Shown here in pieces: positions 942 through 59,893 of a stretch of 64,000 bases of DNA (position 1 is the stretch's first letter; every line of letters starts with the position of its first letter). The stretch comes from Phaeosaccion multiseriatum (taxonomy: Eukaryota; Protista; Ochrophyta, other classes), in assembly GCA_965112735.1 (NCBI GenBank), contig OZ218961.1:1612001-1676000 (forward strand), in the 5' to 3' direction. Under the pieces are notes generated by a model. The model was not told where the DNA came from. It did not search any database and worked only from the letters and a program-made list of their open reading frames with translations. Both the position numbers and the translations under genes were made by a program.

Positions 942-944
942 GGC

Positions 945-42000: not shown

Positions 42001-45000
42001 CGTTAGCTACCCCTGGTCCACGACCTCTCCACCTGCGGAGCAGGTGGCCACTTGGGAGTCCAGCCCTATTCCTGTTGGCCTCGAACAGCCGGCTACGGCG
42101 TGGATGTGGATAGTCCTCAGCTTGCATACTGCGACGCCTTGGAGCGGGAGTCGGACATCTCCCGGGCCCTCGCCTACGACTGAAGGGAGGAGGCCTCTCA
42201 CTGGCTTCCCACCTTCGCCCGAGCGCCGCGACGGCGCGAAAGCCTGTTCAGCAGCGCAGCAACGGAACTTTGTTTCTCGCGGAACAGAGACGAGGAAGAG
42301 GTGGGAGACATGGGAGCCAGCAGGGCGAAGCGTCAGCGTAGGTGCTTGGTACCGCCCCAAGGGGGGGGGTCCCCTCTGGGGAGATGTACAGTATGTCAGT
42401 GAAGCAGGGAATTTAGATTTTTCAGAAGAGGAGAGACCTTGGCGTGTGCTGTCACTTACTGAGGCGGCGGAGACAGAGCCCAGGAAGAGTGGAGCACACT
42501 GTCAAGGAGGAGAGTAGATACTGGTGTGGTGGAAAGCGAGCCTCTTGTCCTGGGCCCGGACAGAGCGCTTGTGTCGGCCAAGGGGACCCGCCTGGTGTTG
42601 AGTGCCGGGGTCCTCGTGGGCGAGGGAAGGAGAGATAGGGAGACTGTGTCTGGTGTTGAGTGCCGACAGTGTCCACGGTGTTGAGTGCCGGAACTCTTCT
42701 TTTCTTTCCCTTTGCCGGTGTTGTGGGGCTCTACGGCTTAGGAACGGTGTCTGGTGTTGAGTGCCGACCGCCTCCCCGGTGTTGAGTGCCGGCGCCTTTT
42801 GCCCTCTTCGCCCTTTCTTCCTTGCTGGTATCGCCGTAGGATCCGCGTCCGGTGTTGAGGCCGACGCCCTACTCATCTCTCCGCCCTCTCCTCTCTCCCG
42901 TGGCCCAAGGTTTGGGGGGTGTGGTCCACGGCATTTTTTGTCTTTTTACGAGACGAAAGGGGCTCCCGGGTGACGGCAGGCCCCTTAGCTCTTCCAGGTG
43001 TTTGTCTGTATGTTTGTGTGTGTATGTCCAGACGGTGTTTCTGTGTGTAGGGTGCGTATTTCCTGTGTTTGGCGTGCGAATATGCGCCTCCTCCGCAAAG
43101 GAGGCTGGCTCTGCGCGCGGTGACAACAGCGGCTCATCCCTCGCCATTCCGGCCCTCAACGGCGGGCGGGGCAGTCCTAGGCAACAGCAGCCGTGGTCAC
43201 TGCCCCTACACACGATGTGTGTTTGTATCTGTGTGTGCTGGTCTGCGTCTGTGTGTGCTAGTGTGCGTTTGTGGGTGCTGGTGTCCCTGTATTGTGCCTT
43301 TGTCTATATCTGTGTGCCTGTGAATGTTTGTGTACGTCTGCGTGTTTAAGTGTACCTCCCTTGTTGTTGGAGTGTCTCCCACCTACAACAGCAGTATGGC
43401 CAGAAGGAGGCGTACGTGGTCGCCACTGAGCTTGCCGGCAGTCTCTCTGGATGGGTGGGGGCGTAGCTGACCTTCGATACGGGAGCTCGCACGGCTCACC
43501 TCCGGCAGCTACATCCGAGAGACATATCGGGCCGAGGAGCGGCGAAGGGAAGGAGACGGACTACAGCTGTACCTCCCTCACCATCTCGAACGCATGGGAG
43601 GGGGAGGGGGGGGGTCCGATGGAGGCTCAGCTCTCAGGACAAACAGCAACCGCAAAGCAAATAGTACGAGCGTCAAAGGTGGCAGCATGGATGCGAAGGC
43701 AGCTATTCGGGCTGTTGGAAGGAACCGGAGAGCCCTTTGATCGTGGTTGGCGCCTCGAGTTTGCGTGTGGAGCGGATATGGGACCTGTGGCCATAACAGC
43801 GAACCGATGGGCGACAAGAGAGGCACAGCATACGAGGGAGAATTGAGAATTGGAAGGCGGCATTGGGAGTGTACGGTACTCGCATTTCGGGAGGTACGGC
43901 AGAGTTTGGTGACCGTCTACGGAGTGTACGGCGATGTACGTCGTCCGGTGCTGAAGGAAATTGGGGCATTGAGCAGTGTGGCTACTTATCTGTAATGGAC
44001 GGCGGAAGCATAATGTTTGGTCGTTCACAACAGCTATGGAGTGGAAGTCGGGGCCTGCCTGTGATGCAGAAGAGAAGGTGATGGTTTTTTCGGCGTTGGG
44101 GCTCGTGAGCGGTGTGAACATGGAGGATGGGAGAGAACAGGGCTTGTGGCTCGCTCTGCTTGCACGACTTACTTCCGGTAGTATGGATGGACTACCCTCT
44201 TGCTATCGTGCTCGGTGGTCGAGGGATTGGTGCCGCCGCGCTTGAGATATTGGACTTGTTCATTTTTCGGGCCCGCAGCACCGAGGTGTTTGGCATTCGC
44301 TGTATTGCTCAGCTGGTACAGCGGAAGTCCACGGCGGACGGTTGGAATCGCAGCAGAGTGGTCTTGGTACGGCGTGTGCAGAAGGGTAACTTCTACGAGT
44401 TGATGTTCGAAGAGCTTGGAGCGGAAAACATGAGCGCTTCTGTGAGGGCATTTTCGGCTTTTCTACAGGGGTTGGATATATGGACACTTTTGGATCTGTG
44501 ATTCCGAAAAGAATCCGAATTTGCTGGTTTGGGCGCGCTTTGCTGCTTCCACCCGCCGTGCCAGAGGACTGCGCAGTGTATTTCGCTCAGTGGCTCGCCC
44601 CCCCCCCCAGCACACTATCCCAAGCGAGTGGGGGGTGTGTGATGGTCAGCAGGGGGCGTGCGAAGGGACCTCTTCAAAGGACACTGACTCTGCCCGTGGC
44701 GACACCAGCGGCTCCTCCCTCGCCATCATTCCTCCCCCAGCAGCGGGGAGCGCAGCCCTTGGCAACAGCACCAGCAGCCCTACACCGGTACACGCGGCGG
44801 GTGTTTGTATGTGTGTGTGTACTGGTGTGCGTCTGTGTCTACTGTTGCCCCTGTATGTGTATTATTATGTCTGTGTGCGTATGAATGTTTGTGTATCTTT
44901 GTGTTTTGTGTACCGGCCGACTACGATCGGGAGAGTGGGCTCCCGACTAGGCTGGGGCAGGTGCTGCTGCACCCTCGCAGCGCACCGGTGGGTACTCGGA

Positions 45001-46357
45001 TGGGTGGGGGTGAAGCGGGACTTGGGGTGCTCACTGCGGTGGCACCCCAAGCTCCACTACATCCGAAACCCGGTGCCCGCCTCCCTCCATGGAGGCGGCC
45101 CCCTTGGAGGCGCTCTGCGCTCCCAAGGTGGGAGTCCCTCACGGGACTGCCCCCCCCTACTAATGATGAGTCCTTCCCCCAACGTTAGCTACCCCTGGTC
45201 CACGACCTCTCCACCTGCGGAGCAGGTGGCCACTTGGGAGTCCAGCCCTATTCCTGTTGGCCTCGAACAGCCGGCTACGGCGTGGATGTGGATAGTCCTC
45301 AGCTTGCATACTGCGACGCCTTGGAGCGGGAGTCGGACATCTCCCGGGCCCTCGCCTACGACTGAAGGGAGGAGGCCTCTCACTGGCTTCCCACCTTCGC
45401 CCGAGCGCCGCGACGGCGCGAAAGCCTGTTCAGCAGCGCAGCAACGGAACTTTGTTTCTCGCGGAACAGAGACGAGGAAGAGGTGGGAGACATGGGAGCC
45501 AGCAGGGCGAAGCGTCAGCGTAGGTGCTTGGTACCGCCCCAAGGGGGGGGTCCCCTCTGGGGAGATGTACAGTATGTCAGTGAAGCAGGGAATTTAGATT
45601 TTTCAGAAGAGGAGAGACCTTGGCGTGTGCTGTCACTTACTGAGGCGGCGGAGACAGAGCCCAGGAAGAGTGGAGCACACTGTCAAGGAGGAGAGTAGAT
45701 ACTGGTGTGGTGGAAAGCGAGCCTCTTGTCCTGGGCCCGGACAGAGCGCTTGTGTCGGCCAAGGGGACCCGCCTGGTGTTGAGTGCCGGGGTCCTCGTGG
45801 GCGAGGGAAGGAGAGATAGGGAGACTGTGTCTGGTGTTGAGTGCCGACAGTGTCCACGGTGTTGAGTGCCGGAACTCTTCTTTTCTTTCCCACCCACCCA
45901 CCCTCAGTCTTAGTTTTAGTTTTAGATACTCATACATTATGGGGGTGAAGCGGGACTTGGGGTGCTCACTGCGGTGGCACCCCAAGCTCCACTACATCCG
46001 AAACCCGGTGCCCGCCTCCCTCCATGGAGGCGGCCCCCTTGGAGGCGCTCTGCGCTCCCAAGGTGGGAGTCCCTCACGGGACTGCCCCCCCCTACTAATG
46101 ATGAGTCCTTCCCCCAACGTTAGCTACCCCTGGTCCACGACCTCTCCACCTGCGGAGCAGGTGGCCACTTGGGAGTCCAGCCCTATTCCTCTTGGCCTCG
46201 AACAGCCGGCTACGGCGTGGATGTGGATAGTCCTCAGCTTGCATACTGCGACGCCTTGGAGCGGGAGTCGGACATCTCCCGGGCCCTCGCCTACGACTGA
46301 AGGGAGGAGGCCTCTCACTGGCTTCCCACCTTCGCCCGAGCGCCGCGACGGCGCGAA
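39060..46357 (+). mobile_element. Non-autonomous split-direct-repeat element present as an internal tandem dimer: A-I-B-A-I-B-A-spacer-B
   Basis: A: 39060-39529, from 42241, and 45423-45891. B: 41823-42240, 45005-45422, 45940-46357. Unit 3181/3182 bp, near identical. Inserted at CCAAAT|GCCGGC with no TSD. A-start and spacer resemble the autonomous element. Confidence 0.88.
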
Positions 46358-46941
46358 GCCGGCTTTGGGCGTCTTTGCCGACAGATTGGGCCATTTGAGC
46401 CTATCTGAGATCCCACTTGGCGCTGTTGTGGCAATGTCGTATCTGTGTTGGGCCTATGGTGCTGAGCCAATGCCTGGACTGGGCATGTAGTGACCAGCAA
46501 ACGCGTCGTTCGGGCTGTGTGTGCCTACCAAATATGCCAAATGCCGGCTTTGGGCGTCTTTGCCGACAGATGGGCCATTTGAGCCTATCTGAGATCCCAC
46601 TTGGCGCTGTTGTGGCAATGTCGTATCTGTGTTGGGCCTATGGTGCTGAGCCAATGCCTGGACTGGGCATGTTGTGACCAGCAAACGCGTCGTTCGGGCT
46701 GTGTGTGCCCCCCAAATGCGGGCTTTGGGCGTCTTTGCCGACAGATTGGGCCATTTGAGCCTATCTGAGATCCCACTTGGCGCTGTTGTGGCAATGTCGT
46801 ATCTGTGTTGGGCCTATGGTGCTGAGCCAATGCCTGGACTGGGCATGTTGTGACCAACAAACGGGTCGTTCGGGCTGTGTGTGCCCCCCAAATGCGGGCT
46901 TTGGGCGTCTTTGCCGACAGATTGGGCCATTTGAGCCTATC
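46358..46941 (+). repeat. 185/176-bp satellite, block 5 (~3 monomers)
   Basis: Resumes in exact phase. Confidence 0.99.
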
Positions 46942-47137
46942 TGTCGAAACTACCGACAGCTAGCCTCAAAGCCAAGCTAGAGCAGAGCAGAAGCTGAAGC
47001 AAGCACCCGGAAGCCAGCCCACACGCAGGCTGCGCTTCCTTTCTTTTATTACTGATTTACCGTCTAGTTGGCCCGTTTTCCGGCCGTTACACTACTGATT
47101 GGGTCCCCAAGGGACCCCAACTAGGCCACTTCTAACA
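46942..47137 (-). repeat. gypsy 3' LTR (~196 bp)
   Basis: Minus strand reads TGTTAGAAG...TTTCGACA, preceded by PPT GTGAGGGGGA (47138-47147). No second copy confirms the boundaries. Confidence 0.8.
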
Positions 47138-47175
47138 TCCCCCTCACTACACCCCCGCCTCTTCCGCCAGCTCCC

Positions 47176-50100
47176 TCAGAAGCCGAGATGCGAGCGATAG
47201 AATTGCGTCTCGTGCGCCAGCCCGCTGCCCCACTTCTCATGTTGCCGCAGACGGATCGTGCTTTCCCGTTTAGACCTATGCCCTCTTTTGACATTCACTC
47301 CTGGATCAAGGGCAGTGTGCGGGAGGGCGTTCTCGAACGCCTCTATGGCCTTGGCGTGTCCCCGCTCCAGTAACCACTCAGCCCATTCCCAGGTCTGGAA
47401 AGTGCCGCCGTCCGACACCGCCCACCGCACGTTATACTCTCGCCGCAGTGGCAGCCCCGTGGCTTTGCGCCAGCGGAACTTCACAATCCTCGCCAGCGTG
47501 GGCACTTTCCCTTCACTCACCTCGTCCAGCTCTAAGCTACGCTGCTCCTGCATTGCGCTGGTAGCCCACTGAGGAGAGCACCAACGGATATGATACCTGG
47601 CGAATCCTTCCGGGAGACCGAAGGGTCGCTCGCTCACCCCATCGATGAACGGCTTCGTCAAGTCTCTGTGGTACGCCCGTTGCAGCTGCTCCACACCATT
47701 GCCGCGCACCCGTTTCATAGACAGATACACTGCGCTGCGCTGCATGACCTGGTAGTGCTCTTCACTCACCCGCCCATGCTGAGCACAGTAGGCCCCCAGA
47801 GCTGGCCAAGGCAAGACTGTATAAGGACCATCCCACGAGTGCTGCAGAGCCTTGAGTTGCGCTGACGGGGGCCCTTCGAGTTCTTCCCCTTCTTGCTGGG
47901 CGGCGGCACCAGGACGATACAACATCACCTTGGTTCCGGGTCGCAGGGGCGTCGGCCAACGGCGTGAGGCGTTCTTCAGCTGCAATCTCCCGTGGTAGTC
48001 GCAGCGCCTCCCATTGACCACCGCCGCAGCCGCAGCCAGACGTGCCCGCAGTTCGTGGACCCATGCCGAGGCAGACGAAAACGACCCGTCCTCCACTAGC
48101 GCCGGAAGCATCGCCTGTAGAGGCACCGGGGGGTGCCGACCGAACAAGGCGTAGAATGGCGCCATCCCCGTGCTCTCCTGCGAGCGGCAGTTGTACGCAT
48201 AGGTGAGCCCGGCGACGTAATCTGGCCACTGCTGCATCTGTGACTCCACGGTCGTCGCCAACATGTCCTTGATCGTGGCCATGAAGCGCTCCACCTGCCC
48301 ATTGGCCTGTTGGTGCATCGGCGTCGTGAACACTTGCGACGCCGATAGAACTCGCATCACATCGCCCATGAGCGCACTGGTGAACTGCGAGCCTTGATCA
48401 CTCACCAGCACTCGGGGCACACCCAGGGTGGTGACGACATGCCGCACGAAGGCCCGAGCAATACCTTCCGCCGTATAGTCCTGTGCCCTCAAAGGCACCA
48501 CCACTGTCCACTTCGTGAACCAATCCTGAAACACCAAGAGGTACTCCTCACCGCCCATGCCCATAGGAAAGGGGCCAGCCACATCAGCGCCCATGACCGC
48601 CCAAGGTCCATCCACCTTGGAAATGGACGACAGCGGCACAGGCTTTGGCTGCCGGCGAGGAGTCTTGCGTGTCTGGCACGCCAGACAGGAGCGGGCCCAA
48701 TACAGCGCATGTGCATTCATCTTCTCCCACCATACGCGCTCTTGCAGCGCGTCTAGCATACGTCCCGGGCCTTGGTGCCCACCTGCGATGGCATCGGTGT
48801 GGGCGGCATGCAGCAAGGCTGGCCGCATCTCCTTGGGCACACATACTTGTAGCCGAGTGTGCCGCACCCGCCACCGAAAGCCCCCAGGAGCCCACTTACG
48901 CATCAAGAGCCCGTCCTCATCCACAAAGAACTCACCCCCACCTGCATCCACCACGCCGCCGGTGGGCCCAGCCTGAACACGGCGACGGAGTGCTTCCAGC
49001 TCCGCATCAGCCCGCTGCGCACGCACCCACCACGCGGCCTCGACATGCAGACTGCCACCCAAAGCTCCAGCCGCTCGTCTGTGCGCCGCGGCAGCAGGCA
49101 CCGTGCCTGGTAGAGACCACCCAAACTGTCGCTCTGCCTCTCGTCGATGCCCATCAAGCTCGCGCTGCAAGGTGGACTCCTGCTCCACCGGCTCCTTGGA
49201 AACTGAATCCACTGCCTCCTCAGCTTCATTATCCACTGCATCCGCAGCTTCATCACCTGCATCCCCCGCTTCTTCCGTGACCAGTAGATCTGCCGTACCA
49301 GGCTCCGACGGCGACTCCGCAGCAGGCGGCTCCCCAGGGTGGGTGATGCGGCCCTCCTCCGTAACAAGCTCCTCCGAGGGCAGACGAGACGCATCCTCCT
49401 CAAGCTCGGCCTCCCATGCAGCCCACGCATGAGCGGCCGCGGCACCCGTTTGCTGAGCCTCCGCTGGTGTGCACATCGAGAAGTAGTCACGCGACACCTG
49501 ACGGACTTGCTTCCATGGCAACTCGATCATGGTATCTAGATGACTGGCCAACGCGCCCACCACCTTCCGCTGGCGCTTATATGTCCGCGTGAACCGCTCC
49601 ACCATCTGCATCATTGTCTCCCACGAGCACTGCAGTTTGAATTGCAGTTTGGCCAGGTCGAATACCTCCAACGTCTTGGAGTGGACACCAAAGATGTAGA
49701 GCGGTGACACGTGGTCGCGATCGCCCCAATAACCAACCGCGGCCTGCATGAACCTGCCGACTTGCATCTCCTCCTGCTCCGCAGGGGTGTGAGCAGGGCT
49801 CATCGCGCTAAGCTCCACCCCCGGGCCACCATGGACGAACGGCACACACTCCGCCATGCGAGGCCAGAGGCGGAGGAGCGCCGCAGCGTCAGCAAACGCG
49901 TACTCCCGTTGAGCGGCGGACAGCGGCCGCTTCGTCCAATCGGTGGCCCGCTCCTCCTTGCTAAGGTGTTGCTCCAAGAACATGCTGACAAGGTCCTGGA
50001 GTCCGATGAACTGAGTATGTTCGGGGCACACGCGCTTAAAGAGGTCACTGGTGTCCACCAAGTTGACGATGTGCTGGACATGCTCCGCGAGCTCCGGCCA

Positions 50101-53100
50101 TCGGCCCAGGGCACGTTGGTCGTGACTCCAGTGGTGAGCCAGCTTCACAATCGAGGGTTCGGTCCACAGGTCCCGCAACACTTGCGCCAGTACCATCATA
50201 CCCCCCGCCTTCTGAAGCGCGTCTAGATCAATCAAGAGCCCATAGTCACGCGCCACATCCGGCAGCGGCCCAACCTGCACGGCCAATTGCAGCAGCGACG
50301 CGCGCCGTCGGTGACGCGCCCACTCCGAATCCATAGCGACCACTTTGGCTGAGCGCAACTGAGTCGATAGAGCCTGCACGTGCCTCGGCGTAGACACGTA
50401 CGTGCACCTCGCTGCGGAAATGTGACTCACAAATGGCGGCATCTGACCCAGCTGCCAGGCCTCTATCACAGCCTTCTTCACACCCAGCTGGGGTGCTCGC
50501 GTAGGCTGCCATCCACATTGCTGAAGACGCTGTGTCCAAGCACGCCGAGCAGTACCCCTGCGTGACTGCGTCGCAGACAAGTCCACCTCTGCAGTCTGCC
50601 AGGCTTGTAGGGCCTCCGCTCCGCTCTGCTGCTGGTGGTGGCACCGTTGCTGCTGTTGCTGGGCCGTCACGGCAGGCACAGGAATAGGAAGGCGTGTGTC
50701 GGCTTCGCCCTGCAGCTGTTGCGCCACTGCGAGAAAGCGAAGCAGTGCGCCCTCCGTGGGCTCCTCCCAATGAAGGCTGCACTCGTCCCCTACCATCTCC
50801 ACCAGGTTCAACTGCACCCCCATCGAAGCACACCAGGTGTGCAAGGGCGACGGCCACTCGCACGCAACCATGGCCAAGTCTACCCCCGCATGCGTCTCCC
50901 ACTCCTGCACCGGAAGCGCGTTGCGAGAGAGGCAGTCAGGCACCACCATTTGCTTCCCGGGACGATGCACAAACTGCAAGTGGTGCGTAGAGAGCCGCTC
51001 GTACCATCTGAACAGCTTGGAATTGGTATCCTTGTGCCCAGCCAACCACAACAAGGGCTGATGGTCCGTCACCACTGTGGTGGGGTAGTGGCAGATGTAC
51101 ATGGCCAGTTTGCGCACACACCACACCACTGCCAGCAGCTCCAGCTCCGTGCTGCTCAGTCGCGCCTCCGTCTCCGTGGTAGCCCGACTGATGAACGTCA
51201 CCACACGCTCCTCCCCGGTCGCATCTTTCTGAGAGAGCACTCCTGCTAACCCTTCCGTCGAGGCATCGGTACTCAGGGTGAAAGTCGTCGCTGGCCCGTA
51301 CTCCGGAAAAGCCAGTGCAGGGGAAGACAACAAGTCGGCAACGAGTCCATCCCAAGCTGCATCGTGCGAGGCATTCCAGGCGGTGCTCACGTCGACGCCC
51401 TTACGCAGCAGCCCATTGAGGGGCCGCACTTTGCGCGCAAACTCCGGAATGAAACGGCGAAAGTAGCTGAGCATGCCAATGAAACGCCGCACCTGCTTAA
51501 CTCGATTGACGCCGCCATCCTTCGCAAGCAACCTCAACGGCTTGACCAGCTCTTGCACCGCCGCATGCTTGGCCGGGTCTGTGCGCACCCCATTCTGATC
51601 CAGCAAATGCCCGCAGAACCGCACCTCCGGTGCACCCAATACAGCCTTACTCGGCTCCAACTTGAGCTTGTGCTCCACCAACCGCGCAAGCACAGCATCC
51701 AAATGCTCCAGATGCTGCTCAACCGTAGCCGAAAACACAGCAATATCGTCCACAAAGCATGCCACATGCTCCTGAAGCCCCTTGAGCACCTTGTTCATAA
51801 GCCGCACAAAGACTGCAGGCGCATTCTTCGCGCCCTGCGGCATCACTCGCCAAGCGTAAGTTCCACTGTGGCACACAAAGGTGGATATGTCCTCTTCCGC
51901 TGCTGATGCCATCGGCACATTGAAGTAGCCCGACATGATGTCCATCACCGAGAACACCTTGGAGCCATGCATCTCTGCCAGCAGATCATCAATCACCGGC
52001 ATCGCAGGGGCCTCCGTGCGACACGCATCATTCAGCTGAGACAAGTCACACGTCATACGTACCACAGGCGTCCCATCCTCATGACACTTGGTTTTGCCAG
52101 CTGCGTCCGTCTTCAAGACCGCCATCAGCGGAGTAGCCCAGCTGGAAGTGCTGGGGCGAATGATGGCAGCCGCGAGAAGCTTGTCAATCTCAATCTCAAT
52201 CCCCCGCCGCAAATGTGGAGGATACCGTCGAGCGGAGCTCCGAATGGGCTGCTGATTCGCATCCTTCAGTCCCCACTCAAAGAAGAGAGTATCCGTCCGA
52301 CCGTAGTCACCAGGCCTCTGACAGAATGCTTGCGACCGAGCGCGAAGGATCGCCACCAGTCCCCAGCGTTGCACCTCCGTCCAGGCACCGTCGCCAATCG
52401 TGATAGCGTGCAGGGGCGACGGTAGCTCCCTGAGCCAGAACTGAGCCCTCTCCGTAGTGAGCTTGGCACGGCGCCGCTGCTCCACCACAAGCTCTCCTGC
52501 ATCCCACGACTCCACTCCCCCACCAAGACAGCGACTCTCCTGCAGCACCGTTCGCAATTGGATGAGGAGCAGCAGCGCATTGGTCATATCCTGCTCCACC
52601 TTCTCCTGCTGCTGTAATGGGCGACTAGACCACAACGACAAGAGCTGTTGGGCCCATGCGGCCACAGCAACGTCCCCAACGCCGCTCAGACCCGTGCCAG
52701 CGGCTTGGTGTACATGGGGGCGCAGGAGCAGTAGCGCGGTCACAGCCCCTTCCTCTGCCGCAACCAAGCACTCGCGCAGACGTCCATACACTCGCTCTGA
52801 CAGGTGAGGGTACCACTCCTTGATCAACTGCACTCCTGCCATCAGAGTCCCACCGGACGTGTCACTCTGGCTACCGAGTCGCAAGGCACCATCCGCATCC
52901 AGTACCCACCCATCACCGCGTAGGTCAGTCAATGATGTGCCCACCGCCGCCGACGATGAACCTGCCTCGGACCGTAGTGGCGGTTCCTCCGACGCCACTG
53001 ACGATGCCGCCCCTGGCGCAGGCCTGCTGGTGGAATCATCAGCCCCCGCCACGTGGTGGACCTGCAGCTGGCCTGTACGAGGCGGTCGGGGCTCCTGCAA

Positions 53101-55200
53101 CTGTGTCTGACGGCGTCGCGCTACCGCCGCCGGAGCCACCTGCTGCTGTACCGCATTGGACCGCTGAACCTGCTGAGCTGCCGACGAATCCGCTCGCTTA
53201 AAGAGCTCTTCCCGCTGGGCCTTGTGCCGTCGCTGCAATGCCCACTGGCGTTGCTGCCGTGCCTGCTGCTGTGCCGCTTGTAACCGCTTGGCCTGCTGCG
53301 TTGCCAACCAGGCTGCTGTCTCCTCCTTCGAGTCCACTCGTGGTGTGTCAGCTCGTCTGGCCGGCACTCGCACTGTCCCCCCCCAGGAGGGCGCCAAGGG
53401 CACGCGACGCTCCCGCGGCACCTGTCGTTGCCCCAAGTCGCTCCCCCAAGCGAGACGAAGCCCTCGGTGATGCCAGGCGCAGGAGCCGTCAGCGCACAGC
53501 TCCCGTCGCAGCGGCAAGACTTGTCGTCGCACTTGCTCATGGCGCTCCAACACTGCTTGCCGATGAACCTGGTCCCACAGCACAGGAGACTCCACAAGCA
53601 TTGATGCCACTCTCCGACGTTGCCGCTGCAACCGCCCAGCACCCACTCGACTCTGACGACACTGACTCCCCTTCTTGCCGCTGCGCTGCAAATGCTGAAA
53701 CCGGGCCTTCACTGCCGGCTGAGGCACCAGAGTCGATGGCACCCCCACCTCAGTCCGTGGGTGCGTCAGGGCCTGCACCTGCACAGCTTGCAGCGGAAGC
53801 GCCGTAGCCCCCAGCTCAGCCTCCTCTGGTACCACCGAGCAGCGAACTACAGGCCCCTGCGGTGGGCACCAGACCGGCTCAGCTCCTGCTTCAGCTTCAG
53901 CCGGCTGCTGCGACGCCTCCTCCTCCACCACAGACTCAACCGCCTCCCGCGCCTTGGACCATGGCAGCCTGCGCTTCACCACACGCCTCACCATCCCGCC
54001 AAGAGCACCAAGCCAGGAGGAGGGGGCCGCTGCAGTCTCCGGCATGGTATCTGAAGAAGCCGGCTCAGCGAGCATGAGCGCGGCCACCTCAGCGCTCGCC
54101 TCCGAGTCGAGCAAGCAAGAAGCGGTGCCGATGACCTGCCCAGGAACGACCACAATGACCTGATTGTGGTGATTCTGCACTGTGATTCGGTAACTCTGCC
54201 CCCCAGCATACACACCATCTTTGTGCGCCACTAGAACCTGCTCGTGCTCCAGCCACCATAGAACGTCCGCCTCTGCCGCCAAGTGTCCGTGAGCGCCCAG
54301 CTCCACCACCGCCTGGACACCCTCAACGATACCCGTAAGCTCGAGGAGAAGGGACCCCGTCTGTCCAGGTCCCAAGCTCAAAGCCTCCACAGCACGTACC
54401 CCCCCAACAGCAGCGTTGCCGTCCACCACTGCCAGCACTTGCACAGCCAAGGCATCGGACGGACGAGCATCCGACGTGGCCTCCTCCGAAGGAGTCGGAA
54501 GTACGTAGAGCTGCTTCGCACGATGATCGACGACTGCCCCTACTTGGGTGAAGAAATCCTGCCCCAAGAAGATGGGCCGCGCCAAGTGGTCCACCACATG
54601 AAAGGGTAGCACCGGCTGGCACGTCGGCGTGAGTCCCACCTGAAGCCAAACAAGCCCTCTGGACATAGTCTTGGCACGATTGTCAGCGTAAGACACCTGC
54701 ACCCCCTTCTGCGTGGCGAGCTCTGACCGCTCCACCGTGCCATCCGCCACCAGTTGATTGAAGCAGGCTGTCGAGATGCAGCCCGCTCCTGTGCACCCAC
54801 TGTCCATCAAGGCTGTAAAGGCGCTCTTCTCCACGGCGTCGGCGGCACTGGCATCCCGTGGAGCGGTAGCAGCCAAGCAATGCCGAGCGTCACTGACCTT
54901 CACTGGCGAGCGCACCGTAACCTCGATCGTGTGGCCCCGCCCTGCTGGGACTGCCGTACGACCCGTGGCAGCCACCGCTTCGGCAATCTCAGCTCTCCGC
55001 ACTGCTGTCTGCAAGGCGGCCACCCCCCCCGGAGCGTCCTCCATCCGCACACGGTAGAGAGCCAAGGCAGCGCGTTGCACACACCCCTCACACATATCAC
55101 ACTCACTGTCAACAGCCGACGCACAGGCACAAGCTCCCGGACTGGGGGCTCCTTGAGCAGAGCGACTCCCGCGCCAGGCTCCAAGGCTACTGCATGACAA
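47176..55200 (-). CDS. pol: gypsy Pol: aspartic protease, RT, RNase H, DEDDy 3'-5' exonuclease, integrase, chromodomain (2674 aa)
   Basis: PR ALMDSGC...FLGQDF. RT SWATPL, MDIMSGYF, MPQGAKNAP, FVDD. RH TDAS, ELELLA, TDHQPL, PDCLSR. Exo AMDSEW, HWSHD, DWTKRPLS..QREYAFAD. IN H..H..CLAC, ADVAGP, SDQGSQF, GQVER, WDGPY. Chromo EYNVRW...TWEW. Confidence 0.95.
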   Translation of the reverse strand: MSCSSLGAWRGSRSAQGAPSPGACACASAVDSECDMCEGCVQRAALALYRVRMEDAPGGVAALQTAVRRAEIAEAVAATGRTAVPAGRGHTIEVTVRSPVKVSDARHCLAATAPRDASAADAVEKSAFTALMDSGCTGAGCISTACFNQLVADGTVERSELATQKGVQVSYADNRAKTMSRGLVWLQVGLTPTCQPVLPFHVVDHLARPIFLGQDFFTQVGAVVDHRAKQLYVLPTPSEEATSDARPSDALAVQVLAVVDGNAAVGGVRAVEALSLGPGQTGSLLLELTGIVEGVQAVVELGAHGHLAAEADVLWWLEHEQVLVAHKDGVYAGGQSYRITVQNHHNQVIVVVPGQVIGTASCLLDSEASAEVAALMLAEPASSDTMPETAAAPSSWLGALGGMVRRVVKRRLPWSKAREAVESVVEEEASQQPAEAEAGAEPVWCPPQGPVVRCSVVPEEAELGATALPLQAVQVQALTHPRTEVGVPSTLVPQPAVKARFQHLQRSGKKGSQCRQSRVGAGRLQRQRRRVASMLVESPVLWDQVHRQAVLERHEQVRRQVLPLRRELCADGSCAWHHRGLRLAWGSDLGQRQVPRERRVPLAPSWGGTVRVPARRADTPRVDSKEETAAWLATQQAKRLQAAQQQARQQRQWALQRRHKAQREELFKRADSSAAQQVQRSNAVQQQVAPAAVARRRQTQLQEPRPPRTGQLQVHHVAGADDSTSRPAPGAASSVASEEPPLRSEAGSSSAAVGTSLTDLRGDGWVLDADGALRLGSQSDTSGGTLMAGVQLIKEWYPHLSERVYGRLRECLVAAEEGAVTALLLLRPHVHQAAGTGLSGVGDVAVAAWAQQLLSLWSSRPLQQQEKVEQDMTNALLLLIQLRTVLQESRCLGGGVESWDAGELVVEQRRRAKLTTERAQFWLRELPSPLHAITIGDGAWTEVQRWGLVAILRARSQAFCQRPGDYGRTDTLFFEWGLKDANQQPIRSSARRYPPHLRRGIEIEIDKLLAAAIIRPSTSSWATPLMAVLKTDAAGKTKCHEDGTPVVRMTCDLSQLNDACRTEAPAMPVIDDLLAEMHGSKVFSVMDIMSGYFNVPMASAAEEDISTFVCHSGTYAWRVMPQGAKNAPAVFVRLMNKVLKGLQEHVACFVDDIAVFSATVEQHLEHLDAVLARLVEHKLKLEPSKAVLGAPEVRFCGHLLDQNGVRTDPAKHAAVQELVKPLRLLAKDGGVNRVKQVRRFIGMLSYFRRFIPEFARKVRPLNGLLRKGVDVSTAWNASHDAAWDGLVADLLSSPALAFPEYGPATTFTLSTDASTEGLAGVLSQKDATGEERVVTFISRATTETEARLSSTELELLAVVWCVRKLAMYICHYPTTVVTDHQPLLWLAGHKDTNSKLFRWYERLSTHHLQFVHRPGKQMVVPDCLSRNALPVQEWETHAGVDLAMVACEWPSPLHTWCASMGVQLNLVEMVGDECSLHWEEPTEGALLRFLAVAQQLQGEADTRLPIPVPAVTAQQQQQRCHHQQQSGAEALQAWQTAEVDLSATQSRRGTARRAWTQRLQQCGWQPTRAPQLGVKKAVIEAWQLGQMPPFVSHISAARCTYVSTPRHVQALSTQLRSAKVVAMDSEWARHRRRASLLQLAVQVGPLPDVARDYGLLIDLDALQKAGGMMVLAQVLRDLWTEPSIVKLAHHWSHDQRALGRWPELAEHVQHIVNLVDTSDLFKRVCPEHTQFIGLQDLVSMFLEQHLSKEERATDWTKRPLSAAQREYAFADAAALLRLWPRMAECVPFVHGGPGVELSAMSPAHTPAEQEEMQVGRFMQAAVGYWGDRDHVSPLYIFGVHSKTLEVFDLAKLQFKLQCSWETMMQMVERFTRTYKRQRKVVGALASHLDTMIELPWKQVRQVSRDYFSMCTPAEAQQTGAAAAHAWAAWEAELEEDASRLPSEELVTEEGRITHPGEPPAAESPSEPGTADLLVTEEAGDAGDEAADAVDNEAEEAVDSVSKEPVEQESTLQRELDGHRREAERQFGWSLPGTVPAAAAHRRAAGALGGSLHVEAAWWVRAQRADAELEALRRRVQAGPTGGVVDAGGGEFFVDEDGLLMRKWAPGGFRWRVRHTRLQVCVPKEMRPALLHAAHTDAIAGGHQGPGRMLDALQERVWWEKMNAHALYWARSCLACQTRKTPRRQPKPVPLSSISKVDGPWAVMGADVAGPFPMGMGGEEYLLVFQDWFTKWTVVVPLRAQDYTAEGIARAFVRHVVTTLGVPRVLVSDQGSQFTSALMGDVMRVLSASQVFTTPMHQQANGQVERFMATIKDMLATTVESQMQQWPDYVAGLTYAYNCRSQESTGMAPFYALFGRHPPVPLQAMLPALVEDGSFSSASAWVHELRARLAAAAAVVNGRRCDYHGRLQLKNASRRWPTPLRPGTKVMLYRPGAAAQQEGEELEGPPSAQLKALQHSWDGPYTVLPWPALGAYCAQHGRVSEEHYQVMQRSAVYLSMKRVRGNGVEQLQRAYHRDLTKPFIDGVSERPFGLPEGFARYHIRWCSPQWATSAMQEQRSLELDEVSEGKVPTLARIVKFRWRKATGLPLRREYNVRWAVSDGGTFQTWEWAEWLLERGHAKAIEAFENALPHTALDPGVNVKRGHRSKRESTIRLRQHEKWGSGLAHETQFYRSHLGF

Positions 55201-56866
55201 GCACGCACAAACGGATCAAGGGCAAGCGTGTGCAGCCCCGCCTCCTCCGTCAACACCGCCGTGAAAGCAGCCTCCTGCTGATGCTGCTGTGCTGCTGCTG
55301 TCGCACGAGCACGCTGCCTCCGCTGCTTCCTCCGTACCCGCCGTCGAAGAGCTACTGCGCGCCTCGCTGCATCCTGCTGCTCCTGTGCCGCCTGCTCGTC
55401 ACCCTTGCGCAGCGCTGCCTTCGCCTGCTGGGCACGCCGTCTCAACCACTTTGCTGCCACCCTCTGCTCAGTCCTGCTCCGCCCCTCCGCCGGAGGCACC
55501 GCTGGAGACGTCAGCGGCAGGGTCCGAAGGCTCTGCTCCTGCTGCTGAAGCTGAACCTCCTCCTGCTGCTGAAGCTGAACCTGCCACGCCCACTGTTCAT
55601 GTTCCCCCGTGGGAGTGAATGGCGGAAGAGATGCTGCCCCGAGCGGTAAGGCCCGCACGAGGCCCATGGCCTTGGCCTGGCGAGGCGTCACCAGGGAGCA
55701 CAGCTGCTGAGGCTGAAGCTCATCGCTTGACGGTGGGCTGGCTTTTGCAACCTGGACGGCAGCCTCGACAGCATGACCCTGCTGCTGCTCCAATTGCTCC
55801 TGCTGCCCCCCGCCACCTGCGGCTGCTGCTGCAGCAGCTGCTGCTGCTGTCCCAGCCGCTGTTGCCGCTCCTTCGCCGCACGCAGTGCGCGCTGTTCCGG
55901 GAAGGCACACGCACGCACCCGCTCCAAACCCCTTGCATCCATCCAGACAGACTCGTGTTGCGCAACGGTTGCCGCCTCGCACTCAACCTCCCCCACTGCC
56001 GACGGTGGCACCTGCTGCTCCGGACACTCACCCGCAACGACTGCATCCTCCTGGCGCAGAGGCAGCGGCAGCGCGACGTCAGGTCCGCTCGACGGCTCGA
56101 CGGCAGAGCCGGGCTGCGGTGCTTCGACTAAGCACACGGAGCGTACCACTGGACACGGCTGCTGCTGCTGCTGCTGCTGCTGCTCCGGCGGCGGCAGCTG
56201 CTCGACTGCGGAAGCCGCTGGCGCAGCCTCCTGGTGCGCGCCCTCCACGACTACCTCTACTGCACGCTGCGCCTGCTGCTGTACCGCCGTCATCGCCGTG
56301 TGCTCACCAGCAACGACTGCATCCGGGCCGTCAGTGCCCCGCGACTGCTCGACCACAGAGCGTACCACAGGACCCGGCTGCTGCGCTAGCTGCCGCTCCG
56401 GCTGCTGGCGCTGCGGCTGCGGCAGCTGCCGCTCCGACGCTGGCAGCTGCTCGACCGCGGACGGCGCAGGCACAGCCTCTCTGTGCGCACCCTCCACGAC
56501 TGCCTCTACGACACGGCGCTGCTGCTGCTGCTGCTGCTGCTGCAGCTGCTGCTGCTGCAGCTGCTGCTGCTGTTGCTGTTGCCGTTGTAGCCGAGCACGT
56601 TTGAGTCTGTCGCCACACCACATGTCACTCCGATAAACTCTGATGGCAGGTGACTCCTGCTCTACACGACTAGCCTGACCGCTCCTACGCTGAGCGTCGG
56701 CATGGGGCAAAGGTGGGTCTGACAAACAAGATAGGTGCGAAGTACATTCATTATCTTCTACACTGCTCTTGCCCGCCCTCCCCCCCTGTTCCCCCACGCC
56801 GACGCTATCCTCACGCGCTGCGGTCGTGGGCCCCAGGGCTGCTGGCCAAGCAGCCCCGGGGCACCG
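55200..56866 (-). other. Gln-rich gag-pol linker: in frame with gag after the UGA, then two apparent frame changes (~55800 and ~55100) into pol
   Basis: ORF 55688-56797 shares the gag frame. ORF 54900-55982 overlaps both it and pol. Contains (CTG)n tracts and internal duplications. Confidence 0.6.
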
Positions 56867-57167
56867 TCAGCCTTCGAACTTGAACCCGTCCTGCGCCGCC
56901 AGAGTGCCCGCCACCATTGCTGCTACGGCTTCAGACATGTCGGACTCCTGGTGCTGCGCTCTGACCGCCTGCCGCCGCTGCACGCGACTCACAATGCCGA
57001 GCAGCTCCTCACGCGTAGCGGGGATGGCGTTGCATTCTATCCATCCATGGCCGGCGCGGCGACAAGTCATGCAGTTAAATGGGGCATTGCCGTTGCCACG
57101 CTGCTTCACCGAGCCGTGGAACAGCAAGGGCCGCTGCTGGGTGGGCGTGAGCCGCGGCTGCTGCGCC

Positions 57168-57202
<35 letters not shown>

Positions 57203-57693
57203 TGCATTCACCCCCACCTCCTGTGACGGCTGATGGTCCAGATGCTGCTCCACCGCATTCACGGCCACTTCCAGATGCTGCTCCACCGCATTCACGGCCA
57301 CTCCCCCGCGCGGAGTGCGCAGACCACCACCACCACCACCACGGGCCCGCGTAGCCCCACCAGTAGAAGAGAGCGTAAGTGGGCTACCAGCCTGGAGCAC
57401 CCGAGTCGCGGAAGGAAATGCCTTCTGGAAGGCGGCGTAGAAATCACTCCACGAGGGAGTCGCCGACTCCCAGCGCAGCCAGAAGTTGGTCATGCCGTCA
57501 GTTAATGGCAACGAGCCGTGACGAAGCCGAATCTCGACCTCTGGCCGCAGCACCGCCAGCAGGCCCGTAACCAAGGCTTGCTCATCCGTGGCCTGCCCCG
57601 TCACCTGCGCCAGACACAGAGAGAGTTCCGCCAGCTTGGTGAGCAGCCTGGCGAGCGCCTGGTTCACCTCGGCAGGAACGGTGGACGCTTCCA
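56867..57693 (-). CDS. gag: gypsy Gag, C-terminal part (5'-truncated)
   Basis: CCHC knuckle CMTCRRAGHGWIEC and capsid-like WSDFYAAFQKAF. The N-terminus in the ORF track is satellite read-in. Confidence 0.85.
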
Positions 57694-59893
57694 GAGATCC
57701 CACTTGGCGCTGTTGTGGCAATGTCGTATCTGTGTTGGACCTATGGTGCTGAGCCAATGCCTGGACTGGGCATGTTGTGACCAGCAAACGCGTCGTTCGG
57801 GCTGTGTGTGCCTACCAAATATGCCAAATGCCGGCTTTGGGCGTCTTTGCCGACAGATTGGGCCATTTGAGCCTATCTGAGATCCCACTTGGCGCTGTTG
57901 TGGCAATGTCGTATCTGTGTTGGGCCTATGGTGCTGAGCCAATGCCTGGACTGGGCATGTTGTGACCAGCAAACGCGTCGTTCGGGCTGTGTGTGCCTAC
58001 CAAATATGCCAAATGCCGGCTTTGGGCGTCTTTGCCGACAGATTGGGCCATTTGAGCCTATCTGAGATCCCACTTGGCGCTGTTGTGGCAATGTCGTATC
58101 TGTGTTGGGCCTATGGTGCTGAGCCAATGCCTGGACTGGGCATGTTGTGACCAGCAAACGCGTCGTTCGGGCTGTGTGTGCCTACCAAATATGCCAAATG
58201 CCGGCTTTGGGCGTCTTTGCCGACAGATTGGGCCATTTGAGCCTATCTGAGATCCCACTTGGCGCTGTTGTGGCAATGTCGTATCTGTGTTGGGCCTATG
58301 GTGCTGAGCCAATGCCTGGACTGGGCATGTTGTGACCAGCAAACGCGTCGTTCGGGCTGTGTGTGCCTACCAAATATGCCAAATGCCGGCTTTGGGCGTC
58401 TTTGCCGACAGATTGGGCCATTTGAGCCTATCTGAGATCCCACTTGGCGCTGTTGTGGCAATGTCGTATCTGTGTTGGGCCTATGGTGCTGAGCCAATGC
58501 CTGGACTGGGCATGTTGTGACCAGCAAACGCGTCGTTCGGGCTGTGTGTGCCTACCAAATATGCCAAATGCCGGCTTTGGGCGTCTTTGCCGACAGATTG
58601 GGCCATTTGAGCCTATCTGAGATCCCACTTGGCGCTGTTGTGGCAATGTCGTATCTGTGTTGGGCCTATGGTGCTGAGCCAATGCCTGGACTGGGCATGT
58701 TGTGACCAGCAAACGCGTCGTTCGGGCTGTGTGTGCCTACCAAATATGCCAAATGCCGGCTTTGGGCGTCTTTGCCGACAGATTGGGCCATTTGAGCCTA
58801 TCTGAGATCCCACTTGGCGCTGTTGTGGCAATGTCGTATCTGTGTTGGGCCTATGGTGCTGAGCCAATGCCTGGACTGGGCATGTTGTGACCAGCAAACG
58901 CGTCGTTCGGGCTGTGTGTGCCCCCCAAATGCGGGCTTTGGGCGTCTTTGCCGACAGATTGGGCCATTTGAGCCTATCTGAGATCCCACTTGGCGCTGTT
59001 GTGGCAATGTCGTATCTGTGTTGGGCCTATGGTGCTGAGCCAATGCCTGGACTGGGCATGTTGTGACCAGCAAACGGGTCGTTCGGGCTGTGTGTGCCTA
59101 CCAAATATGCCAAATGCCGGCTTTGGGCGTCTTTGCCGACAGATTGGGCCATTTGAGCCTATCTGAGATCCCACTTGGCGCTGTTGTGGCAATGTCGTAT
59201 CTGTGTTGGGCCTATGGTGCTGAGCCAATGCCTGGACTGTGCATGTTGTGACCAGCAAACGCGTCGTTCGGGCTGTGTGTGCCTACCAAATATGCCAAAT
59301 GCCGGCTTTGGGCGTCTTTGCCGACAGATTGGGCCATTTGAGCCTATCTGAGATCCCACTTGGCGCTGTTGTGGCAATGTCGTATCTGTGTTGGGCCTAT
59401 GGTGCTGAGCCAATGCCTGGACTGGGCATGTTGTGACCAGCAAACGCGTCGTTCGGGCTGTGTGTGCCTACCAAATGCGGGCTTTGGGCGTCTTTGCCGA
59501 CAGATTGGGCCATTTGAGCCTACCTGAGATCCCACTTGGCGCTGTTGTGGCAATGTCGTATCTGTGTTGGGCCTATGGTGCTGAGCCAATGCCTGGACTG
59601 GGCATGTTGTGACCAGCAAACGGGTCGTTCGGGCTGTGTGTGCCCCCCAAATGCGGGCTTTGGGCGTCTTTGCCGACAGATTGGGCCATTTGAGCATATC
59701 TGAGATCCCACTTGGCGCTGTTGTGGCAATGTCGTATCTGTGTTGGACCTATGGTGCTGAGCCAATGCCTGGACTGGGCATGTTGTGACCAGCAAACGCG
59801 TCGTTCGGGCTGTGTGTGCCCCCCAAATGCGGGCTTTGGGCGTCTTTGCCGACAGATTGGGCCATTTGAGCATATCTGAGATCCCACTTGGCG
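57694..59893 (+). repeat. 185/176-bp satellite, block 6 (~12 monomers)
   Basis: Same monomer and orientation as the other blocks. Confidence 0.99.

Follow-up and report, generated by a model that had tools for sequence, protein, structure and literature searches.

The window, that is, the whole 64,000-nt stretch of Phaeosaccion multiseriatum DNA analyzed here, carries on its reverse strand a copy of an LTR retrotransposon (Table 1). By its PR-RT-RH-IN domain order, its gypsy-type RT-RNase H, and its LTRs, the element is of the Ty3/gypsy (Metaviridae) type. Full copies elsewhere in the genome are 12.45 kb long, with 196-bp TG..CA LTRs. The purine-rich tract ahead of the 3' LTR recurs in four copies besides the window copy, and a 4-bp target-site duplication is visible in two of the four copies examined. 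In the window copy, the 5' LTR and ~1.7 kb of internal sequence at the 5' end are missing; over 10.75 kb it shares 99.9% identity with copies on C10 and C14. Upstream of position 57696, the other copies continue with shared sequence, and the 3' flanks differ from copy to copy. The 2,674-aa ORF of the original prediction is present, but the element is not intact: judged against the other copies, the window copy is defective, with a 5' truncation and two 1-nt frameshifts, both upstream of the protease. The deletion near 55149 shifts the frame and thereby sets the start point of the 2,674-aa ORF. The upstream ORF, of 619 aa, has no Pfam match at an E value of 0.1 and is named gag by position only. 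In addition, the bases immediately after the 5' LTR complement the predicted start of the transcript within the LTR over 9 nt in the family of the window copy (family 1) and 8 nt in a second family of this genome (family 2); the self-complementarity site lies at LTR position ~124 to 131 in both families, and the two covary.

Table 1. Features of the retrotransposon copy in the window
Feature	Position	Strand	Basis or remark
5'-truncated family 1 copy, Ty3/gypsy-type LTR retrotransposon	46942..57696	-	full element 12.45 kb
3' LTR, 196 bp, TG...CA termini	46942..47137	-	ends TGTTAG...TTTCGACA
Purine-rich tract, candidate polypurine tract	47138..47175	-	between pol stop codon and 3' LTR
Pol ORF	47176..55200	-	2,674 aa in window copy; ~3250-3274 aa where uninterrupted
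Integrase	48328..48840	-	H2C2 zinc domain 48661-48840, DDE core 48328-48588
Region X, ~150 aa, after exonuclease	49396..49851	-	40% aa identity between the two families
DEDDy 3'-5' exonuclease (DNA_pol_A_exo1)	49852..50400	-	Pfam, aa 1601-1783, E 1e-20
ExoIII (YAFAD), D1771	49888-49890	-
ExoIII (YAFAD), Y1767	49900-49902	-
ExoII (HHWSHD), D1694	50119-50121	-
ExoI (VVAMDSEW), E1626	50323-50325	-
ExoI (VVAMDSEW), D1624	50329-50331	-
Conserved N-terminal extension of exonuclease module	50401..50553	-	family 1 versus family 2 alignment
RNase H	50989..51378	-	Pfam PF17917 and PF17919; RT_RNaseH aa 1304-1404
Reverse transcriptase, FVDD active site	51607..52047	-	Pfam PF00078 (RVT_1), E 1.9e-27, aa 1052-1198
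Aspartic protease active-site motif D-S-G	54790..54810	-	translation
1-nt deletion, approximate site	55149	-	versus copy with uninterrupted Pol
Second 1-nt deletion, approximate site	55812	-	versus same uninterrupted-Pol copy
In-frame stop between gag-position ORF and pol	56867..56869	-	frame continues on both sides, in window and C1 copies
Gag-position ORF, 3' part, cut at 57696	56870..57696	-	no recognizable Pfam gag domain

Along the 2,674-aa frame, the protease, recognized by its D-S-G motif, is followed in the order of the Pfam matches by reverse transcriptase (RT), RNase H, DNA_pol_A_exo1, and integrase (IN), and in family 2, a weak gag-asp_proteas match lies at the position equivalent to that of the protease motif. 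The integrase comprises matches to Integrase_H2C2 (PF17921; aa 2121-2180, E 1.3e-14) and rve (PF00665; aa 2205-2291, E 3.7e-6), and positions could be assigned to its D, D, and E motifs in the Pol of the window copy. Assignment to the chromovirus clade is not supported: a chromodomain-like look by eye is insufficient, PF00385 is absent at the integrase C terminus, and neither it nor any other Pfam profile matched the 274 C-terminal Pol residues at an E value of 5. On the other side of the integrase, the exonuclease (Exo) and the region X that follows it form, by alignment of the two families, one module with variable low-complexity linkers on either side. Its N-terminal extension, which is preceded by a variable Q-rich linker, is a high-confidence part of the exonuclease domain in the AF2 model. 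Region X has no Pfam or Atlas match, is modeled with a pLDDT of only 40 to 70, and shows a dN/dS of ~0.5 between the families.

Identity of the exonuclease domain

The original prediction of a DEDDy exonuclease lying in frame between the RNase H and integrase of a gypsy Pol is confirmed by the order of the Pfam matches and by the fold. The segment matches DNA_pol_A_exo1 (PF01612), the profile that had been expected, with 74.7 bits against a cutoff of 23.6 (E 1e-20), and the same match occurs in three other copies or families. The ExoI, ExoII, and ExoIII motifs previously described are all present with their acidic residues and tyrosine intact (D1624, E1626, D1694, Y1767, and D1771); they align one by one with the catalytic motifs of Rrp6 in PDB sequence matches, and the five catalytic columns are invariant or nearly so in a 53-sequence alignment with cellular homologs. 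The structure prediction proposed as a check yielded a model (pLDDT 92, pTM 0.89) with an RNase H-like alpha/beta exonuclease fold, for which the top Foldseek matches are the Nibbler EXO domain, RNase D, the WRN exonuclease, and Rrp6 (E 2e-11 to 1e-9, probability 1.00, TM ~0.65-0.8). Further fold matches include the apicoplast and Aquifex Pol I exonuclease domains and EXD1. The structural neighbors include RNA enzymes (Nibbler, RNase D, and Rrp6) as well as one that acts on DNA (WRN), so that the fold does not reveal the substrate.

The domain thus shares its Pfam family, DEDDy motifs, and fold with the cellular Mut-7/Nibbler/EXD3, RNase D, Rrp6, and WRN enzymes, but it is only 24 to 36% identical to them, lacks the Mut7-C, HRDC, or helicase partner domains, and, unlike them, sits in a retrotransposon polyprotein. 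In particular, Mut7-C (PF01927) was absent from all four Pol proteins scanned with Pfam. The closest cellular relatives in both sequence and fold are Mut-7/Nibbler-type enzymes. In phylogenetic analyses, which carry long-branch warnings, the transposable-element exonucleases formed a clade of their own (100/99) on a long stem, nested in a 22-row set (97/87) to which all six rows with Mut7-C belong. Neither the alga's own genome nor 1.84 billion representative proteins yielded a close cellular donor.

These affinities bear on a proofreading role, in which the exonuclease would remove misincorporated 3' nucleotides during reverse transcription, acting in trans on the RT primer terminus and, like nidovirus ExoN, raising the fidelity with which the long (9.8-kb) pol gene is copied. 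The Pfam family is that of the domain with which family A DNA polymerases proofread, the fold matches include Pol I exonuclease domains, and both the element (12.45 kb) and its Pol (~3250 aa) are of unusual length. However, the tree, with its long-branch warnings, groups the domain with the Mut-7-like set rather than with polymerase exonucleases, and since RNase H and a partly low-complexity linker of ~200 aa separate it from RT, no fixed polymerase-exonuclease geometry is expected. Much larger LTR elements, such as Ogre and Burro, have no exonuclease (PMC6431247), and we consider proofreading improbable. The nidovirus nsp14 ExoN and the arenavirus NP exonuclease, which serve in proofreading or immune evasion (PMC7968707), are likewise DEDD exonucleases captured by replicating RNA elements, but they are of the DEDDh type and belong to RdRp-using RNA viruses rather than being domains of retroelements.

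Copies, selection, and distribution

Genome-wide, 46 Exo matches were found, of which ~30 are full length without stops, many in frames of 2,000 to 3,300 aa. The RH-Exo-IN layout is common to the two families, whose RTs are 81% and Exo domains 59% identical, and a subfamily, 1b, has the same architecture by Pfam. Beyond these families, the most similar gypsy RT of the genome reaches only 31 to 34% identity. Exo lies at a fixed distance from RT in 16 of 16 family 1 and 7 of 8 family 2 full RT matches, and no autonomous copy without the domain occurs among the full RT matches of these families. None of the 24 copy stretches compared, some of which represent one copy in overlapping loci, has lost a catalytic residue. 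Between families, dN/dS (Nei-Gojobori) is 0.21 to 0.23 for Exo with saturated dS, compared with 0.05 for RT and 0.09 for IN, so that Exo is less constrained than either. By this substitution pattern, the domain, with its complete active site, is under purifying selection. In addition, the LTR pairs of full copies are 99.5 to 100% identical and the copies are 99 to 99.9% identical to each other, from which we infer that the elements transposed very recently.

The original prediction had allowed that the domain might be confined to one copy and evolve neutrally, and the number of matches and a dN/dS of ~0.2 rule against this. A captured host fragment hitchhiking in Pol without a function might be read from the weaker constraint on Exo than on RT or IN and from the rotifer ORF3s, which show no clear departure from neutrality (PMC5408684). 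This reading is nevertheless close to refuted by the low dN/dS over saturated dS, by the ~30 copies without stops and the lack of any autonomous copy without the domain, and by a complete active site in two families with RTs 19% diverged. A catalytically silent RNA- or DNA-binding module with a binding or scaffolding role, as in EXD1 or Maelstrom, is also rather unlikely; EXD1 is among the fold matches, and some DEDD derivatives are inactive and do no more than bind RNA (PMC5408684), but both families keep all five catalytic residues unchanged although the domain itself has diverged by 41% in amino acid sequence. Inactive DEDD relatives typically lose their catalytic residues. From sequence and model, the domain is almost certainly a genuine exonuclease within Pol that is maintained by selection and probably active.

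Outside this genome, the only traces were one 917-nt metagenome fragment and contigs of ~88 to 90% identity in one "plant metagenome" run. The best database relatives of the Pol are gypsy Pols with at most 39% identity, and the Exo domain is present in none of the 120 nearest. An in-Pol exonuclease between RNase H and integrase was not found in the papers or protein databases searched, which supports the earlier view that this is a nonstandard gypsy Pol architecture. The DEDDy accessory ORFs of rotifer retroelements named in the original prediction are borne out and were the only reported case found: in bdelloid rotifers, the LTR retrotransposons Juno and Vesta carry a DEDDy ORF3 (Rodriguez et al. 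2017, PMC5408684). The Athena/Terminon elements are also among the closest known systems (Arkhipova and Yushenova 2019, PMC6431247). By description, gypsy-like LTR retroelements have taken up a DEDDy exonuclease of the RNase D-like kind both in rotifers and in the alga, with 3'-end processing or silencing proposed for the rotifer ORFs and activity putative in both. However, ORF3 is a separate frame downstream of pol with a motif altered to DEED and no clear selection, whereas in the alga, a host with a red-type plastid, an in-frame Pol domain keeps an intact DEDD-Y site under purifying selection.

Possible roles of the Pol-encoded exonuclease

In our favored reading, to which we assign a probability of about 0.4, the exonuclease module would trim primer or cDNA of the element itself at the 3' end. 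The Exo-X module would be produced within Gag-Pol and packaged alongside RT and integrase, where it would remove single-stranded 3' ends of replication intermediates, that is, unpaired or nontemplated nucleotides on primer or cDNA 3' ends, and so supply the integrase with clean CA-3' termini. The module may travel with RT-RH, with IN, or alone. Its location directly upstream of the integrase between flexible linkers is consistent with such trimming, as is the candidate Tf1-like self-priming signature in both families. Elements that prime themselves in the Tf1 manner may have to process the ends of primer and cDNA further. Retroviral-type integrases carry out their own 3' processing, so that a separate trimmer is not obviously needed, and the weaker constraint on Exo than on RT or IN also argues against trimming. 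The structural relatives of the domain trim 3' ends of single-stranded RNA or DNA (PMC5408684), and in CRISPR systems, a fused DnaQ-like exonuclease trims integrase substrates (PMC10284694). The scheme would be akin to the natural Cas1-Cas2/DEDDh "trimmer-integrase" of type I-E CRISPR, which trims 3' overhangs of DNA to be integrated (Wang et al. 2023, PMC10284694) and likewise joins, in a natural fusion, a DnaQ-like 3'-5' exonuclease to the machinery of integration. That trimmer, however, is DEDDh rather than DEDDy, comes from prokaryotes, and is fused to Cas2, which is unrelated to the retroviral-type integrase. Its function has been demonstrated; that of the algal domain is proposed.

The affinity with Mut-7/Nibbler-type enzymes, which act in small-RNA pathways, bears instead on counter-silencing, in which the exonuclease would degrade or shorten host small RNAs (siRNA or piRNA-like) that target the element, or their precursors. 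Exonucleases of the ERI-1/SDN type dampen RNAi. Young, multicopy elements would fit escape from silencing, and a silencing-related role was also raised for the rotifer DEDDy ORFs (Rodriguez et al., PMC5408684). Against this stand the absence of Mut7-C and the location of the domain, since an internal Pol domain would be made in low amounts and enclosed in particles, where an enzyme meant to attack small RNAs in the cytoplasm or nucleus would be badly placed. Counter-silencing appears distinctly less probable than trimming.

An accessory enzyme of nucleic acid metabolism at the RH-IN junction of Pol has a parallel in the nonprimate lentiviruses, which carry a dUTPase between RNase H and integrase. 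The dUTPase is released from, or carried with, the replication enzymes, but it is a different enzyme, acts in nucleotide pool sanitation, and has a different host range. Other positions of dUTPases have been mentioned (PMC6431247).

A trimming or proofreading role, if true, would run counter to the textbook view that elements replicating by reverse transcription have no exonucleolytic editing of their DNA. Among polymerases, reverse transcriptases are the classic example that lacks an editing nuclease, and accessory enzymes acquired by retroelements, such as dUTPases, extra RNases H, and chromodomains, each exposed a bottleneck in the life cycle. A retroelement that uses an active exonuclease of its own, within Pol, on its replication intermediates would be the first retrotransposon "trimmer-integrase" or RT proofreader, which we regard as possible but doubtful. 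The isolated domain may also serve as an enzyme paired with RT in vitro. These elements offer a natural, young, multicopy system in which a complete DEDDy site is kept beside the integrase in two diverged families, so that what a retroelement may gain from 3'-end trimming, proofreading, or small-RNA degradation becomes directly testable. With this finding, the capture of DEDDy exonucleases by LTR elements reaches beyond rotifers, which have the enzyme as a separate ORF, to an alga whose plastid is of the red type and in which the enzyme forms an in-frame domain of Pol.

The Pol exonuclease and the element that carries it

The original prediction placed a DEDDy 3'-5' exonuclease domain (Exo; DNA_pol_A_exo1, PF01612) in frame between the RNase H (RH) and integrase (IN) of a gypsy Pol, and the Pfam domain order, with an Exo match far beyond chance, confirms this observation. 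The translation shows the protease D-S-G, reverse transcriptase (RT) FVDD, and integrase D, D, E motifs, and all of the exonuclease motifs first read from the sequence are found in it, the catalytic residues being D1624 and E1626 (ExoI), D1694 (ExoII), and Y1767 and D1771 (ExoIII). A PDB sequence search aligns these residues with the catalytic motifs of Rrp6 and also matches chains of NrnC, RNase D, a Mut-7 homologue, and the WRN exonuclease. When Exo is aligned with its best cellular relatives (53 sequences in all), the columns for D, E, Y, and D do not vary, and the column for the ExoII D is nearly invariant. The AlphaFold2 model built on this alignment (mean pLDDT, 92; pTM, 0.89) has a confident DEDDy exonuclease-like fold, in agreement with the Pfam match; its best Foldseek match is Nibbler EXO (7jw2; E, 2e-11), and other top matches are E. 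coli RNase D, the human and mouse WRN exonucleases, and Rrp6. The exonuclease within Pol is a real, well-supported feature and an unusual Pol architecture.

Features of the window copy and its surroundings (residues numbered in the window copy's frame)
Feature	Window position	Pol residues	Strand	Evidence or remark
Element copy (family 1)	46942-57696		-	5'-truncated
Open Pol frame	47176-55200		-	2674 aa
RVT_1		1052-1198	-	Pfam
RT_RNaseH		1304-1404	-	Pfam
DNA_pol_A_exo1 (Exo)	49852-50400	1601-1783	-	Pfam; E 1e-20, 74.7 bits (cut-off 23.6)
Region X	49396-49851	1784-1935		directly after Exo
Integrase_H2C2		2121-2180	-	Pfam
rve		2205-2291	-	Pfam
Protease-RT gap	about 52080-54450	about 250-1040		no recognizable domain
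Acidic linker length variant	49371-49374			after X
Stop between gag-position ORF and pol	56867-56869			in frame
Two 1-nt deletions	near 55812 and 55149
LTR-internal complementary site	within 46942-47137
Satellite array	46222-46941 and 57697-59816			185-bp units
Tandem repeats	40000-46300			3181-bp units
Microsatellite	60444-61500			8-12-bp units

The 2674-aa frame was correctly described as uninterrupted, and it covers Pol from the protease to the end, but it is carried by a defective copy of the element. Two other contigs carry copies with 99.9% identity to this one. Because the flanks vary between copies, the 3' end of the window copy (...TTTCGACA) represents its true terminus; its 5' end is a truncation, because other copies run on with common sequence at that point. 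Relative to a copy with an uninterrupted Pol, two 1-nt deletions cause its frame to begin at 55200. Full copies are 12.45 to 12.57 kb long, with LTRs of 196 bp (TGTTAG...TTTCGACA) that are 99.5 to 100% identical within a copy. Their 3' LTR is preceded by a purine-rich tract, and two of the four copies examined show a 4-bp duplication of the target. In several other copies, a stop in the same frame separates a 619-aa upstream ORF from a Pol frame that runs uninterrupted for 3250 to 3300 aa. The gag-position ORF has no Pfam match, and the stop between it and pol is conserved in other copies, such that production of Pol would, as read from these frames, require stop-codon readthrough. At full length, Pol is roughly twice as large as is usual for gypsy elements and contains long stretches with no recognizable domain, namely, region X and about 800 aa between the protease and RT. 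A different gypsy-like element (G000:C10:8280-9338), with an RT that is 33% identical, lies within a 4622-aa open frame, indicating that giant Pol frames are not confined to the Exo-bearing families. The truncated element is embedded on both sides in a satellite array, and the rest of the window consists mostly of other long tandem repeats, together with a microsatellite.

Alignment of family 1 with family 2, the two Exo-bearing families in the genome, divides the insert into seven successive segments. RNase H is followed by a conserved block, a variable linker rich in Q, and a conserved N-terminal extension continuing into Exo; after Exo itself come region X, of about 150 aa, with 40% identity between the families, then an acidic or G-rich linker that varies strongly, and finally conserved sequence leading up to the zinc domain of the integrase. 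This order indicates that two flexible linkers bracket an Exo-X module. The acidic linker has 35 extra letters in contigs of three runs, and its length therefore differs among copies or strains. Even at an E value of 5, Pfam has no match for X, the RH-Exo linker, or the C-terminal 274 aa, and the ESM Atlas has no usable match for X. X reaches a pLDDT of only 40 to 70 in an AlphaFold2 model of Exo plus X, and no fold can thus be named for it. Proofreading of the RT by Exo would be attractive for a 9.8-kb pol, but the long flexible linker and the existence of much larger LTR elements without Exo (PMC6431247) make such a role unlikely.

Copies, constraint, and host genome

Searching the 67-Mb assembly in six frames identified 46 Exo matches, including about 19 in family 1 (89 to 100% identical) and about 11 in family 2 (59% identical), and the domain is thus not confined to the window copy. 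Most of the matches are without stops, and many lie within frames of 2000 to 3300 aa. Family 2 elements are 13.3 kb long, with LTRs of 202 bp that are 100% identical, and for family 2 and a 95%-identical subfamily, Pfam places the domains in the identical order, Exo lying between RNase H and integrase. An assembly or chimera artefact is ruled out by junctions common to about 30 copies on 11 contigs. Exo lies at a fixed distance from the full RT match in 16 of 16 cases in family 1 and 7 of 8 in family 2, and beyond these families the closest gypsy RT in the genome reaches only 31 to 34% identity, which indicates that the common ancestor of the two families already had Exo and that no Exo-less sister survives in this genome.

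Nei-Gojobori estimates between family 1 and family 2 gave a dN/dS ratio of 0.21 to 0.23 for Exo (dN, 0.37; dS, about 1.7, which is saturated), compared with 0.05 for RT, 0.09 for IN, and about 0.5 for the 150 aa of X. Exo is therefore constrained, although less tightly than the core enzymes, and neutral evolution, which had been raised as a concern, does not describe it. The catalytic residues are kept in all 24 copy stretches examined, some of which represent one copy in overlapping loci. Given the dN/dS ratio and the integrity of the copies, it is highly improbable that Exo is a neutral passenger, and a role as an inactive binding module is quite unlikely for a domain whose active site is invariant. 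Exo is a motif-complete DEDDy domain under selection inside Pol. Between two family 1 subfamilies (L029 and L031), dS is 0.02 to 0.04 in Exo and X versus 0.1 to 0.2 in RT and IN, a five- to ten-fold reduction that points to recent recombination moving Exo-X between subfamilies.

Copies and fragments of both families cluster in one 450-kb stretch (G000:C14:2.30-2.75 Mb), with further clustering near contig ends (C5:8-32 kb, C11:10-12 kb, and C16:2.397-2.409 Mb), which suggests that the elements are preferentially inserted into, or retained in, chromatin that is rich in repeats and may be centromeric or subtelomeric. With regard to the host, the only rbcS is an uninterrupted frame of 140 aa present on two contigs (G000:C18:86571-86867 and G000:C21:20654-20950), which fit a plastid derivation, and the assembly contains no GT5 starch-synthase domain. 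The placement of rbcS and the missing GT5 domain fit a red-type plastid, as far as gene content can indicate, and do not fit a green alga, a host that GC content had initially suggested and that is rejected.

Relatives and origin of the exonuclease domain

When 1.84 billion representative proteins were searched exhaustively with HMMER, there was one close match to Exo, a 186-aa protein with 47% identity on a 917-nt metagenome contig. Similarity to family 2 runs beyond the stop codon of this protein into region X, and the contig is thus probably a piece of an element related to this one. The next matches are 24 to 36% identical, and the distant ones that were checked are often of the Mut-7 type (Exo with Mut7-C, sometimes with a tRNA_edit domain); RT or IN domains were found in none of the long proteins among the best 150 Exo relatives. 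No match came from a word-indexed search in which the Exo region was compared with the long proteins among 5.8 billion, and a scan of metagenome contigs with the Exo alignment revealed no RH-Exo-IN locus, all of its matches being distant and partial (29 to 43% identity). The RT-to-IN span, used as a query, identified 304 gypsy Pols, the best being 39% identical over RT-RNase H, and PF01612 is present in none of the best 120 of these. The element itself is contained in Logan contigs of five 'organism A' runs. Contigs of one 'plant metagenome' run differ at about one letter in ten over Exo, RNase H, and RT, indicating that a related strain or species also carries it. The records list none of these runs as RNA.

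A maximum-likelihood tree unites the retroelement exonucleases in a single, long-stemmed clade (100/99), nested in a set with all of the Mut7-C-bearing rows (97/87), a placement to which long-branch warnings apply. Cellular PF01612 exons are present in the host genome; none is close to the domain of the element, and recent capture from the host is rejected. The kinship with Mut-7 and Nibbler would be in keeping with counter-silencing, in which Exo degrades small RNAs, but the location of Exo inside Pol and the lack of a Mut7-C domain alongside it leave this role doubtful.

Candidate function and comparison with known elements

A site at LTR position 124-131, located about 30 nt past a TATAA-like box, has its reverse complement in the 8 to 9 nt directly after the 5' LTR (ACCCGGAAG in family 1 and ACCCGTTT in family 2). 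Covariation is seen between the two families, and no TGG-type tRNA primer site was observed. This pattern, read from a C14 copy (L014 plus L022) for family 1 and from L018 and L020 for family 2, represents a putative Tf1-like self-priming signature in both families; the window copy has only the LTR-internal complementary site. Tf1-type self-priming can leave ends that need extra processing.

Exo may trim the 3' ends of the element's own replication intermediates, a tentative reading, preferred over the other roles considered, to which we assign a probability of about 0.4. It is favored by the position of the Exo-X module directly upstream of the integrase, by the structural relatives of Exo, which shorten RNA or DNA from single-stranded 3' ends, and by the putative self-priming signature. 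In addition, trimming is favored by the precedent of Cas1-Cas2/DEDDh, a natural fusion of a DnaQ-like exonuclease and an integration machine, which trims 3' overhangs before integration (PMC10284694).

The original statement that DEDDy exonucleases accompany some rotifer retroelements as accessory ORFs proved correct, with the association reported for the bdelloid Juno, Vesta, and Athena/Terminon elements (PMC5408684 and PMC6431247), the only DEDDy-LTR retrotransposon association found in the literature searched. In the rotifer elements, the exonuclease is a separate ORF3 with a DEED variant and no clear selection (PMC5408684 and PMC6431247), whereas the algal Exo is an in-frame Pol domain that is motif complete and selected. 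No report of an in-frame RH-Exo-IN Pol was found in full-text searches of the literature (Repbase, Dfam, and GyDB lay outside the search). On this basis, DEDDy capture by LTR retroelements is known, and the Pol position, the host lineage, and the selective state are new. The insertion point of Exo has a precedent, in that non-primate lentiviruses carry a dUTPase at the RH-IN junction. The function of Exo is open to direct experimental test.
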